NCBI RefSeq assembly: GCF_023055435.1
Contig: NW_025963846.1
Span: forward strand, 15,810,001 to 15,874,000
Length of the DNA stretch: 64,000 nt
Source: Haliotis rufescens
Taxonomy: Eukaryota
Direction: 5' to 3'
In this document: in pieces, positions 3,614 to 50,230 of the stretch
How the letters are laid out: each line of letters starts with the position of its first letter
How positions within the stretch are numbered: the stretch's first letter is position 1
Notes under the pieces: model-generated
Database searches by the model: none
What the model saw: only the letters and a program-made list of their open reading frames with translations
Told to the model about the DNA's origin: nothing
Position numbers and translations under genes: made by a program

Positions 3614-6600
3614 ATGGCAAAGTTATTGTTTGTCGTAGTTTTGACTGTGCTGTCAATATCTGCATTTACAGAGGCGCAATTCTTTTTCCGTAAGTAATTG
3701 TTTCGTTTTTCGTTGTTTGTTGTTTCTCTCTTATCAAATCCGTAAATAGTTGACGTCTATGCGCAAAGTCAATATACTCTGATGACATTATATCAAATTT
3801 CAGAAAAACGTGATCTCGTCATGACATCGTATTTTTGACATTATACATGTACATGTATACCAAGCTACGGCACCCTCTGCGCAGATTGTCTTTGAACACC
3901 TTCACAAATTCAAAAGTATATTTAAACCCAGTGGGACAATTGATTATATAAAAGCGACAAAACACTTTCCATATTCACAAGAAATATCTGCAAAGCAGCA
4001 TCGATTGTACGATTACTATATCACGAGCATGTGATTATGAAGTACTATCAAATAGTGAGGATACTGGGTATTAGCGTAAATCCCAGTGTATCCTGCCCAA
4101 TAAGTGGCACCAAACACAAACACATGCAAAGACAAGTCAATTGTTCACCTGAACAAATTTGAATATATGTGTTAAAGTGTTTCCTTTTACCTACATAATA
4201 ACCAGGATGGGACACGCAGTTGAATGCGATAAAAGCGACCAAACCCTTTTCCATGTAAGCAGAGTCGATGGTACTATTTCGACTATCACATGAGCATGTG
4301 TTTATGAATCACTATCAAATAGTGATGATACCAGGTTTTTTCCAACAGAGGACAGTTTGACAGACCATTGGCTAATATAGGTCTATAGGAGAAAATATGC
4401 CCTCATTCCAAGTATTGATGTTGTCCTATATGTCCTTTAATAATTCGGACAGTAACACGATTCATTAAAATACTTGGCAAATATTAACAGAGAAACGGGC
4501 AAACAGATTGTCAACATTGCCTTGAAATGTCGGCAACGAAATGTCATAACACAGAACGACTGTCATATTGCAGGTACAAATGCAGGAAATATGGGAACGT
4601 ACATGTTGTCCTCTATGTGTCTGAATATTGCAAATCTAGATTAGACTGAAGGAAAATACTTTATCATGAATCTATGACTTTGATGTGAAAACGGACATCC
4701 AAGCTATAAACAGTCACTATGCCAAATAGGAGTAATTTAGCTGTTTTGTTTTAAACGACTTCTACTCTAGAACTAAGAGATAGATATCAAACTCGCCCTG
4801 GGGTCCAGCCTTGCCTCTGGAAACTTAGATCCTGGATCTTAACATGGAAACGGTTCAGATCTTTATACTACTTTTGTATCTAGAGAAGTACACGTTCATG
4901 CTATCAGATTTGCCATCCACCCCTTTTAAATGCTGGCAGAGTCAAAGCTACGAAATATTTGCAGTATTATATACCAGTACAATGCAAATGTATATTTTGT
5001 CATGATTGAGTAAATATCCAGGTGAGCGATACAGGCGCAATGGGCCTCTTGTTTGTGTCACAGCATTGATTATACAACTTTACAAAAGGGTGATTTAAAT
5101 TGTAAATCTAATATCAGGGTTATTACAGTCTAGAGCATTTTCACTTTTGAATAATAGATTACAGTTCTAGTGTGATATATAAACCGTGAGAACAACAGTC
5201 TGGCTCCAGCAATGGTTATTTTACTGTGGATAATGATTTTATCTTACAGTCTGTTGTTGGTCGCATGTTAAGTAAAAGAAGGGTGAAGTGCGTGGTTGGT
5301 TAGTGGATTTTTCAAATATCTTTGATTGGGTAAACCGATATAAATTGTGGGCAGTTTAAGAACATAAGGGAGTATCACCGATATCAAATCATGTATTGAA
5401 AACATGAATATATTTCTCAAAACCTATCGCTGATTGATCGGCGATCATACCCTTATTCCAAATATGGGCAGAAGTAGTTGCACCGGTCTCAGCGATCGCC
5501 AGTCGGTCGCAAAAGAAATCAGTCGCCAAGAGGTCGCATCGCGGTCGCATTGTCTGTGTGACTGTAGCTTTAGAGCCCTGATCTGTGGAACCCGAAGGCA
5601 GCAGTAACAGTGTTCTTCTCATATTAGTCATACTGTGATTTCATTTGTTATACATTTAAGATAAAGTAAGACGAGTTCTATGGATGAACAACTTCTTTAT
5701 TACAATAATTGTTCATCCATAGAACTCGTCTTACTTCTAAATGCTACTCAAAGAAGAAACTTAAGATAGTTTGGGTGAAGAAAAAACCACAAGTTTGAAA
5801 GGGAGAAAACATGTTTCGTGTGACCTCAATGATCAATATAAATAACATCAAGCTACCCTAATCAGTCTTGACAAGAGATTTCTTGTTAAGCTAGAAGACG
5901 GAGAAAACAGTAAATCCATATTACACATATCATCGTCATCTTATATAATACAATATTTGCCGCAGAGTGTCCTCCAAACTGCCACGATACTGAGTGCACA
6001 TCCATGGGCTGTGTCACCTGTGACCCGGGCTACTGCAGATACTACAGCACAACCAACAAGTGAGAAGAATACGGGATGAAGGGTAGAATGGGATGAAATA
6101 TCTAATATTACCTATGAGGATAGACAAATCGTGTGCTACAACATTCCCATGTTCACAATGCCCATTGTTTAATTGAAGACGATATGGCGTCACAGTGCTT
6201 CATTATTGACAAAGATTCGATATGTCATCCATTGTTCGCATTATAAATTGATGACACAACGTCATCGGAATGAGAAGGTGCAACATAATGAGTTTTATTT
6301 AAAGCAGTATCAAATATTCGATAACATGGCTATAAATTGACTGATCTACTGATGGTAATACGTTTTTGTCCGACAGAATAGGCATATGCGTCCTTGCATG
6401 CCCGACTGGAATGCACTGTTACCATGGTGTTCTCTCCGTCTGTACGAGTAAGTACACCATACTCAACCTCGATGTATTAGAATCTGTCCACCGAATACGA
6501 TAGATACAGAAAATACTGATGAACGTATAAGAACTGCCTTCTCATGGTAGGTAGAGTTTAGGGTGCGGGTGTGACGAGTGGAATTTGGACCTTATATGAC

Positions 6601-7508
6601 ATGATAGACACAATTTTTTGGATAACAACTTCTTTAATACTGTAAAAAGCGACGTTTCGGTATAGATCCTTATACCGTTGTCAAGCAAGACTGAATGAGG
6701 GACATAGTGCAGAATATATATAGCAAGTGGAGGATTAACAGTAGAGGATTAACAGTAACAACAAGGGCATACATGAGTGGGATAACATAGGTAGGTGTGA
6801 CAACAAGGATGATGCTATCACAACACGATGGACAGAAAACACATAGCTAGAAGCCAAGTAATGCCTATCAAACAACTTATATGACATGACACCATCTCAA
6901 TCGGTGAAGACGATTCAGCTGTTTTCCCGTTGAGAAGCCAGAAGCACATGCCTTTGGGTGACGTGTGCTGCATGGAGTACATACATACGTGTGGTGTTCT
7001 TGCAACACCGACGCCCTGTACCGTAGAGACCGCTGTATATTCCTTTGGGTGACGTGTGCTGCATGGAGTACATACATACGTGTGGTGTTCTTGCAACACA
7101 TGACGCCCTGTACCGTAGAGACCGCTGTATATTCCTTTGGGTGACGTGTGCTGCATGGAGTACATACATACGTGTGGTGGTCTTGCAACACCGACGCCCT
7201 GTACCGTAGTGACCACTGTATATTCCTTTGGGTGACGTGTGCTGCATGGAGTACGTACATACGTGTGGTGTTCTTGCAACACTGACGCCCTGTACCGTAG
7301 TGACCGCTGCATATTCCTATGGGTCGTGATACACATATTTCTGTGTTAGGGATGGCGCTGCAATATTGCTGGTTGTAAAATAAAAATCCACCCATTCACT
7401 AGACTTACAGCGACTGTAAGACGATCAAAACTAACAACGGGAGGCCGGAAATTAGGACCACCAAAAGAACTGCTGAACTCACCATCGGATTTCGGGCATT
7501 CGTTATGA
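3614..7508 (+). CDS. Secreted 10-Cys furin-like-repeat peptide, paralog 1 (last exon uncertain)
   Basis: Exons 3614-3689, 5966-6059 and 6377-6447, all GT-AG, phases 1/2/1, give MAKLLFVVVLTVLSISAFTEA|QFFFQCPPNCHDTECTSMGCVTCDPGYCRYYSTTNKIGICVLACPTGMHCYHGVLSVCT. The homologous terminal exon lies near 7411-7552 (AATAAA 7547) but has lost its polypyrimidine tract. Possible ends: 7411-7508, 7421-7434 or 9000-9046. Confidence 0.85.
5664..5736. repeat. Perfect 28-bp inverted repeat with 17-nt spacer
   Basis: aagtaagacgagttctatggatgaacaa (5664-5691) pairs with ttgttcatccatagaactcgtcttactt (5709-5736). Confidence 0.9.
6951..7325. repeat. Minisatellite, 91-92 bp x4, in intron 3 of paralog 1
   Basis: Units start at 6951, 7042, 7134, 7225. 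Confidence 0.95.
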
Positions 7509-49018: not shown

Positions 49019-49075
49019 CAAGTTTACAGAAGCCTGATCTCCTGAAGGTAACACGTTATTTGTCTTGTCCGACAG

Positions 49076-50230
49076 ATTCATATGCATCAAAACGTGCCCG
49101 GTTAGAATGTATTGCCAACACAGTGTTCTCGCCATGGGGAGAAGGTGGCAATAAGTGGTGCACTTGTGCCCAATCCCTTTGTCTTTTGGATAACAAAATA
49201 TGTTTAAAACAATCACGTGGTAAACACGTTCCTTCTTCTCAACACATTGTTTTCAGGACATCCAACATAGCCAGCGAACATTTTTGTTGGTAGAACCTCT
49301 TTTCGAGTTTTTTCTTCAACAGAAAAAAACAGCCTTTACCCGACACAGTAACACAACACACACCAAAACATTTTCCCAGAGTGAACGTGAAACAAGGATA
49401 TTGTTATCGAAATCATGGCTAGTCGACATTATTTATTTCCAAATGTTCCTTTGAGAAGGACATAAACCCATGCTCCCGTATTACAAAAAGTCCACCTAGA
49501 GTTATAGCTAATATTTGTGTGCAGTAGATTACTAAATGAACGGCATTGTCAGCGGAAGGCAAGGGAATATTGTATAAGCGCTTCGCTCAATCTATGCAAC
49601 GGATTCAGTTGTTTTCCTGTTTGCTAGCAGGAAAACGCGTGCGTTTGGATCTCGAGGCAGCAAAGTTGTTTTAGCAACACCGCTCTTTGTCTTTGTGACA
49701 AATGCATTTTGCTATGGGTCGGGATATACATACTTCAGTCGGGCGGTTGCTATTGTTTTTTTTCTTAATTCTGACACATATACTAATAGAGTCGGGTGCT
49801 GACTAAATTAGACGTTTACTGTCCCTGCCTTTTCAATAGAGACGATCGGAACGAACAACTGTGTGCCGAAGTGAGGAAAGCCAAGGGAACTTCTGAACAC
49901 TTCATGGGACCCGTGAAGAATAGGTCTTCAGTAACCCATGCTTGCCGTAAAATGCGACTATGCTTGTCGTAAAAGGCGACTAACGGGATCGGTGGTCAGG
50001 CTTGCTGACTTGGTTGATGCATGTCATCGTATCCCAACTGCGTGGATCGATGCTCACGATGTCAATCACTGGATTGTCAGGTCCAGACTCGATTATTTAC
50101 AGACCGCCGCCCTATAGCTGGAATATTGCTGTATGCGGCGTTAAACAACAAACAAACTTCATGGGACTTCTTGCATTCATTATAATTGAGATTTGATCTG
50201 TGCAAGTACTGGATAAACTCACTGAATAAA
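49076..50230 (+). pseudogene. Paralog 6 of the Cys-rich peptide family, partial or degenerate (exons 3-4 only visible)
   Basis: Acceptor tgtccgacag at 49075 is followed by FICIKTCPVRMYCQHSVLAMGRRWQ* (49076-49154). The last Cys and the gtaagt donor are missing. Homologous intron 3 and terminal exon (acceptor 49839, AATAAA 50225) follow. Exons 1-2 are not seen; an assembly gap lies immediately upstream. Confidence 0.65.
49911..50155 (+). mobile_element. SINE family B (AAAC-repeat tail) inserted in the 3' UTR of paralog 6
   Basis: 12-bp TSD acttcatgggac (49899-49910 and 50156-50167). Other copies at about 18700-18900(+), 28195-28345(-), 32105-32345(-), 52765-52990(-). Confidence 0.85.

Follow-up and report, generated by a model that had tools for sequence, protein, structure and literature searches.

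A tandem cluster of probable genes for ten-cysteine secreted peptides with a predicted single furin-type repeat in the abalone Haliotis rufescens

In the genome of the abalone Haliotis rufescens (RefSeq assembly GCF_023055435.1), a stretch of 64,000 nucleotides (nt) of contig NW_025963846.1 (positions 15,810,001 to 15,874,000 of the forward strand; hereafter the window) contains five intact four-exon genes arranged in tandem on the + strand, with starts at positions 3614, 15530, 25362, 30087 and 39214, and a decayed sixth copy. We consider it very likely that the cluster consists of real genes encoding secreted peptides built on a single furin-type (FU) repeat. As the overall explanation we favour, with good confidence, a lineage-restricted tandem family of single-FU, disulfide-locked secreted binding modules. 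A role of these peptides in host defence or recognition is the likeliest function in our view, but is suggested here tentatively.

The recurring + strand unit was recovered five times by a repeat scan and by alignments of the window. These alignments bear out the five complete four-exon models that an initial annotation, made from the letters of the sequence, had proposed for a tandem cluster at this place, with canonical GT..AG borders at all junctions of the five joined models. Exon 1 and the promoter can be aligned across the five copies; from the ATG to the donor GTAAGT there are 76 nt in each, and intron 1 lies in phase 1. The lengths of exon 2 are 94, 88, 91, 94 and 91 nt in copies 1 to 5, all of them 1 mod 3, hence intron 2 is in phase 2 in every copy. 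Exon 3 measures 71, 71, 70, 77 and 70 nt, and intron 3, in phase 1 in copies 1, 2 and 4, is in phase 0 in the other two, copies 3 and 5. Exon 4 contributes between zero and a few codons, its remainder being a conserved 3′ untranslated region (UTR) with AATAAA signals. A conserved promoter-like stretch precedes each unit, with a TATA-type box approximately 55 nt upstream of the ATG that reads TATATA or TATAAA in copies 2 to 4 and is present as weaker variants in copies 1 and 5. The joined frames comprise 79–85 amino acids (aa) with exactly ten cysteines and, in 5/5 copies, a 21-aa signal peptide ending in T-E-A that is followed by Gln. The uniform exon 1, the order of intron phases, the signal peptide and the ten invariant cysteines, all named in the initial annotation, are thereby confirmed in the five copies. 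The spliced models were joined by script for alignment, substitution analysis and tree, while database searches used single exons or database proteins.

In copy 1, the coding part of exon 1 with the signal peptide (3614..3689) is followed by exon 2 encoding Cys1–Cys6 (5966..6059), exon 3 encoding Cys7–Cys10 (6377..6447) and exon 4 with a short coding tail and the 3′ UTR (7403..7585, AATAAA at 7547 and 7560); here as in the other copies the end of exon 4 is approximate. The acceptor of this exon is ambiguous (7403, 7411 or 7421), which affects only the tail beyond Cys10. Copy 2 has a TATATA box at 15448–15459, its exons are located at 15530..15605, 16381..16468, 17363..17433 and 18189..18340, its stop codon at 18200–18202 and an AATAAA at 18315. 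For copy 3, with TATATA at 25308, the exons are found at 25362..25437, 25672..25762, 26227..26296 and 27085..27235; the first codon of its exon 4 is the stop TGA (27085–27087), after which the 3′ UTR follows with AATAAA at 27210. Copy 4 has TATAAA at 30032, exons at 30087..30162, 31178..31271, 32556..32632 and 33808..33960, a stop codon at 33813–33815 and AATAAA at 33936. The exons of copy 5 lie at 39214..39289, 40129..40219, 40979..41048 and 41792..41955, again with TGA as the first codon of exon 4 and with AATAAA at 41919 and 41932. All these exons are on the + strand. At the C-terminus, copy 4 ends in Gly-Lys (33808–33815) and copy 2 in Gly (18189–18202), which resemble C-terminal amidation signals; copies 3 and 5 terminate right after Cys10-Ile-Asn.

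When the 1.33-Gb assembly was queried with exon 2, the only matches were the five exons of the window and one degenerate duplicate, and queries with exon 1 and exon 3 gave the same distribution. The exons of the paralogues are 70–92% identical, and up to Cys10 indels are either absent or in frame; the sole length difference not divisible by three, 7 nt at the end of exon 3, lies past Cys10. The introns are 46–72% identical, with hundreds of gap columns. On the protein level the five copies share 50–75% identity, distributed unevenly: the scaffold motifs C1–C2, C5–C6 and C8–C9 are 67–89% identical and the loops C2–C3, C4–C5, C6–C7 and C9–C10 are 25–31% identical, with C6–C7 variable in length too. 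The ratios of non-synonymous to synonymous substitution rates (dN/dS) range from 0.08 to 0.72 for the signal peptide and from 0.24 to 1.33 for the mature part. Both measures bear out the picture of a conserved signal, a fixed cysteine scaffold and variable loops that had been drawn for this family. The seven synonymous codon changes that had been counted in exon 2 between copies 3 and 5 proved exact; in total 12 codons differ there, five of them non-synonymously, and over the mature part of the same pair there are 11 synonymous vs 16 non-synonymous changes. A tree of eight sequences resolved a single grouping, copy 1 with copy 2.

Intron 3 of copies 3 and 5 (26297–27084 vs 41049–41791) is 92.7% identical, with flanking exons at 82–87% and their other introns at 60–67%. 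This similarity is absent in other pairs and suggests either a gene-conversion tract or faster exon change. That exons diverge faster than introns in general was considered and rejected, being true only for this intron of this pair.

The degenerate duplicate belongs to an inverted segmental duplication on the minus strand (G000:C68:15477100-15516700), approximately 305–330 kb off and ~90% identical to window positions 14000–32470. Its copy 2 has an open 74-codon frame with nine cysteines, Cys4 and Cys5 being gone; its copy 3 lacks exons 1–3; of its copy 4, exon 1 and all that follows intron 2 are missing, and the remaining exon 2 is 98.9% and the flanking intron 92.5% identical. This decayed duplicate is a natural control, and the copies of the window are by contrast all intact. 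The duplicate shares with the window a 64-nt tandem array of copy 4 (31258..31837, + strand), of which it has more units; the array is thus older than the duplication. In the window, the array extends into intron 2 and reiterates the final 14 nt of exon 2 together with the donor, and CAGGTGAGAG is present nine times. Only the first use of this sequence keeps the frame; a later donor leads to a frame shift unless three units are added.

Relatives of the peptides are rare in databases. A profile from six exon-2 translations was searched against 1.84 billion representatives and matched P0001 clearly (82 aa, E 4e-11) and P0003 more weakly (133 aa, E 5.8e-5); the third match, P0002 (1080 aa), was rejected as a relative because it rests on spurious repeat similarity. 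P0001 and its near-twin P0004 correspond to the RefSeq proteins XP_046544513.1 and XP_046544542.1 of the sister species Haliotis rubra, both 82 aa long and automatically named "proprotein convertase subtilisin/kexin type 6-like". They agree with the window peptides in the signal, in all 26 residues from Met to Cys1 and in the positions of the ten cysteines, and are 63–70% identical to copies 3 and 5, 57–70% across copies 3–5 and 43–44% identical to copies 1 and 2. They differ in being computational predictions from a sister species and are unstudied. Against the H. rufescens genome, these proteins matched exons 2 and 3 in distinct blocks, exclusively here and in the degenerate duplicate, and so lend independent, though computational, support to the exon joins. 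The name is misleading because 82 residues are too few for a protease domain; it likely derives from the FU-type cysteine repeats of PCSK5/PCSK6. Word-indexed searches of 5.8 billion clusters, including words from the exons 2 of the window, returned only the H. rubra cluster and a chiton protein and none from this genome, hence the five genes look unannotated here.

The chiton protein, P0003, is XP_064598601.1 of Liolophura sinensis, labelled "PCSK5-like", and was the only relative from outside Haliotis found among the 1.84 billion representatives. It has a signal and an FU repeat and aligns to P0001 between the signal and the CPxG motif, both included, with 37% identity across 71 aa (E 2e-16); its best match in the H. 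rufescens genome is exon 2 of copy 1. It differs by lacking C6 and C9, where it has a Tyr and a longer loop, and by more FU-type cysteine repeats after the first. To Furin-like_2 (PF15913) it scores 25.6 bits vs a cut-off of 28 bits, and this match is also listed as precomputed. Judged from these alignments, the abalone peptides are homologous to the small chiton FU protein, and the tandem array appears restricted so far to Haliotis.

For the fold, the H. rubra homologue P0001 was modelled with AlphaFold2 on a seven-row alignment in place of a window product, giving a mean predicted local distance difference test score (pLDDT) of 80.9. The predicted model shows the three-hairpin, disulfide-laddered fold of FU repeats. 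Nine of the top ten Foldseek matches were R-spondin Fu1-Fu2 chains (E ~0.01–0.1, probability up to 1.0), and the cysteine-rich domains of insulin receptor and ErbB proteins ranked under them. In a search independent of Foldseek, a Z of at least 2 was reached by 12 of 48,161 PDB representative chains, every one of the 12 containing FU repeats; four R-spondins reached Z 7.7–8.2, more than 4 Z units above the remaining matches. VIA-align placed model residues 27–82 on R-spondin residues 39–97, which is FU1, with Z 8.8, a root-mean-square deviation (rmsd) of 1.4 Å over 54 residues and 26% identity; superpositions on R-spondin FU1 overall gave Z 8.2–8.8 and rmsd 1.4–1.9 Å over 53–57 residues. Eight of the ten cysteines coincide with R-spondin FU1 cysteines, C6 and C9 being extra. 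In the alignment with the chiton protein, the FU spacing motifs C-x2-C-x-x-G-aromatic and C-x3-C-P-x-G are both present in invariant columns with two cysteines added: C6 occupies the position behind the first G-F/Y motif, in place of another residue, and C9 that behind G-M-Y. The canonical bonds, taken by homology from the FU1 disulfide ladder of published structures, are presumably C1–C3, C2–C4, C5–C7 and C8–C10. Once these pairs are assigned, C6 and C9 are left over, and they probably form a fifth disulfide that would link hairpin 2 to hairpin 3.

From these data we propose the following. Each gene would have a TATA-type promoter and begin with an exon for the signal peptide; its single cysteine-rich module would be shared between two short exons, and the final exon would be nearly all 3′ UTR. 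Cleavage of the signal at T-E-A|Q would release a peptide of 58–64 residues, the N-terminal Gln of which is probably cyclised. The peptide would fold into a single FU repeat similar to R-spondin FU1, with three β-hairpins held by four canonical disulfides plus the putative family-specific C6–C9 bond, each of these two cysteines standing just after a motif of Gly and an aromatic residue or Met. Variation would be concentrated in surface loops and be strongest where exons 2 and 3 meet, at the tip of hairpin 2, whose C6–C7 segment differs in length between paralogues. FU repeats as a class serve in protein binding, and the corresponding region of FU1 in R-spondin contacts ZNRF3/RNF43. Combined with the variable surface loops, this leads us to read the peptides as diversified extracellular binding modules; the paralogues may act as protease-resistant binders, each for different extracellular targets.

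Several results weigh against this proposal. The predicted fold rests on a shallow alignment of seven rows and on the H. rubra homologue rather than on a window product, and the C6–C9 bond is a putative one. Apart from one chance match to Fer4 among the ten exon translations, neither P0001 nor the exons matched a Pfam family at thresholds up to E 10. Applied to the genome, the PF15913 profile matched the genome's own R-spondin and not the window exons, so that the link to FU by sequence profile is an indirect one, via the chiton protein. Sequence searches of the PDB, with single sequences and with profiles, were insignificant, R-spondin-2 being one of only two weak matches. BLASTP of P0001 against the FU1 exon of the genome's own R-spondin gave E 0.26 and no similarity, and the scores of a search of the ESM Atlas, ~0.8, were at noise level. 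A transcript-derived protein of the family was absent from the databases searched. The repeated donor of copy 4 could disturb the splicing of that gene. Moreover, net charge ranges from −3 to +5 across the peptides, which therefore are not uniform cationic antimicrobials; this range argues against a uniform membrane-active mechanism.

Comparison with known systems sets the peptides apart from each of them. In R-spondins, a pair of FU repeats precedes a TSP1 domain and a basic tail (PMC12111769). The abalone peptides resemble R-spondin FU1 (Pfam Furin-like_2, PF15913) in being secreted, in the predicted three-hairpin fold and in eight shared cysteines; they differ in that they would constitute one free-standing module without FU2, thrombospondin domain or basic tail, and in the extra pair C6 and C9. 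The H. rufescens genome has its own canonical R-spondin-like gene (G000:C112:37210213-37211198, minus strand), with FU1 and FU2 in one exon each (PF15913, 67 and 29 bits), whereas the module of the abalone peptides is encoded by two exons that meet at the hairpin 2 tip. An N-M-R-Q type hairpin motif is present in this R-spondin. A conserved receptor-binding hairpin, as expected of an R-spondin, was not seen in the peptides, where the hairpin tip is the most variable part. We rejected an identity as R-spondin on the grounds of the single module of a 58–64-residue mature peptide and the absence of the defining domains. The cysteine-rich domains of PC5/6 and PACE4 (PCSK5/PCSK6) likewise consist of FU-type cysteine repeats; there, however, they are part of large, multi-repeat proteases with subtilisin and P domains, features that the abalone peptides lack. 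An identity as PCSK5/6 was rejected for products of 79–85 aa that match no Pfam domain and lack a subtilisin-like catalytic or P domain.

MgCRP-I of Mytilus (PMC4558851) and the conotoxins resemble the abalone family in their style of evolution, with gene expansion, a conserved signal region and fixed cysteines in an otherwise hypervariable mature peptide, but differ by six cysteines, a pro-region and another fold, and show no sequence or Pfam relation to it. The view that the peptides match no named molluscan family was upheld by the Pfam results for the exons and for the full-length H. rubra homologue: for the latter there was no match at E 10 to those families among defensin, big defensin, mytilin, myticin, macin and conotoxin that Pfam models, and its ten cysteines follow an FU pattern. 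A published description of an abalone single-FU peptide family was not found in full-text literature searches. The suggestion that the framework is undescribed hence stands with regard to the literature and has to be revised otherwise, since the scaffold is an FU repeat by predicted fold and chiton homology and the family is already present in H. rubra RefSeq. What would be new is an FU repeat freed from a larger protein, with a putative added disulfide and tandem expansion, of which the automatic and misleading RefSeq name in H. rubra is the only prior trace found.

Four other explanations were weighed. The peptides could be R-spondin-like Wnt modulators, that is, free FU1 modules that bind the PA domain of ZNRF3/RNF43 without LGR recruitment and compete with or mimic the animal's own R-spondin. 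In favour of this, R-spondin FU1 is the best and a specific structural match of the predicted fold, and the most variable segment lies within the C5–C7 hairpin, the counterpart of the FU1 contact with ZNRF3/RNF43 in solved complexes. Yet the genome's own R-spondin FU1 has no significant sequence similarity, PF15913 does not match the exons, the hairpin tip is not conserved, its sequence and length varying from paralogue to paralogue, and a tandem, fast-evolving, genus-restricted family is atypical of a core developmental ligand, all of which makes this reading quite improbable. Somewhat less improbable, albeit still doubtful, are classical antimicrobial peptides that attack membranes or cell walls directly, like defensins or mytilins. 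Small size, secretion, richness in disulfides, and a tandem expansion in which the signal is conserved and the mature part varies would fit, and copy 2 is cationic (+5); however, charge is neutral or negative in 4/5 copies and in H. rubra, no antimicrobial peptide family was matched in Pfam, and the FU fold is known for protein binding, not for membrane activity.

Among the alternatives, another extracellular role, as shell-matrix or mucus components or as gamete or pheromone recognition proteins, ranks highest, though we still regard it as unlikely. Proteins of gamete and pheromone recognition and of shell and mucus also evolve fast in abalone. The products are secreted, the family is confined to the abalone lineage, and evolution is quick, with only 57–70% identity between H. 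rubra and copies 3–5; searches of the shell-proteome and reproductive literature, on the other hand, found no mention of such a peptide. Finally, the paralogues might be unexpressed relics, intact by chance or recent duplication and without function today. The decay of copy 6 and of the distant duplicate is in line with this, but five copies at 50–75% protein identity all keep ATG, frame, splice sites and 10/10 cysteines amid indel-rich introns, the synonymous changes between copies 3 and 5 exceed the neutral expectation, and intact relatives exist in H. rubra. We judge the relic explanation highly improbable. A tandem family of single-FU secreted binding modules thus remains our preferred reading. 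A more far-reaching version of it, in which a single FU repeat was freed from its multi-domain context, stapled by a fifth disulfide and diversified in its hairpin loops within the tandem array to give a new fold class of molluscan defence or recognition effectors or natural free-FU1 ligands of PA-domain receptors such as ZNRF3/RNF43, is speculative and rather unlikely.

If expressed, the genes would represent a previously undescribed family of abalone secreted peptides on a fold otherwise found in growth-factor receptors, proprotein convertases and R-spondins. If the proposal is true, abalones, a farmed and endangered group, would possess a stable five-disulfide FU module of 60 residues whose loops are naturally diversified. 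Such a module would be a candidate effector of immunity or recognition, as well as a natural case of a free-standing FU1 scaffold. The cluster also illustrates that short-exon genes can evade annotation in one species and gain a misleading "PCSK6-like" name in another.

For the sixth copy, which had been described as partial, an incomplete copy is indeed present, yet it is decayed and not merely partial. Its exon-3 relic (49076..49140, + strand) retains Cys7–Cys9 and has lost Cys10, the donor GTAAGT is changed to ATAAGT, and the conserved Gly of the CPxGM motif is replaced by Arg. At the expected site of the exon-4 acceptor there is a dispersed repeat (49922..50157, − strand), and a remnant of exon 4 and 3′ UTR (50156..50377, + strand) can be aligned to copy 4 at 33868–34104. 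An assembly gap (48661..49018) in its intron 2 stops 57 nt short of the exon-3 relic; homology to intron 2 of the paralogues begins at the gap edge, and on its left side the gap adjoins sequence collinear with the intergenic stretches downstream of copies 3 and 4. According to this collinearity the sixth promoter and exons 1–2 are expected about at the gap, and they are either hidden in it or deleted. A second gap (38168..38314) is intergenic, 4 kb past copy 4 and 0.9 kb ahead of the ATG of copy 5, and touches no exon or reading frame.

Further features were noticed in the window. Fragments of Tc1/mariner-type transposases (HTH_Tnp_Tc3_2, DDE_3) are located at 21793–22398 (− strand) and 37514–37957 (+ strand), the second abutting the gap at 38168. 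An open frame at 62139–62606 on the − strand strongly matches the protein kinase domain Pkinase (E 7e-44) and probably belongs, as an exon, to an adjacent gene of opposite orientation. The segments 44669–45266 and 46113–46708 form a direct tandem duplication with a spacing of ~1442–1444 bp and stretches of 100% identity, either very recent or an assembly artefact, and related copies are found at 50870–51217. A tRNA-derived short interspersed element of ~80 nt occurs in many copies in the introns and spacers of the cluster, among them those at 13453, 16602, 23772, 25849, 31846 and 40307, and a tRNA-like match at 20731–20789 passes the Rfam threshold for tRNA with 33 bits.

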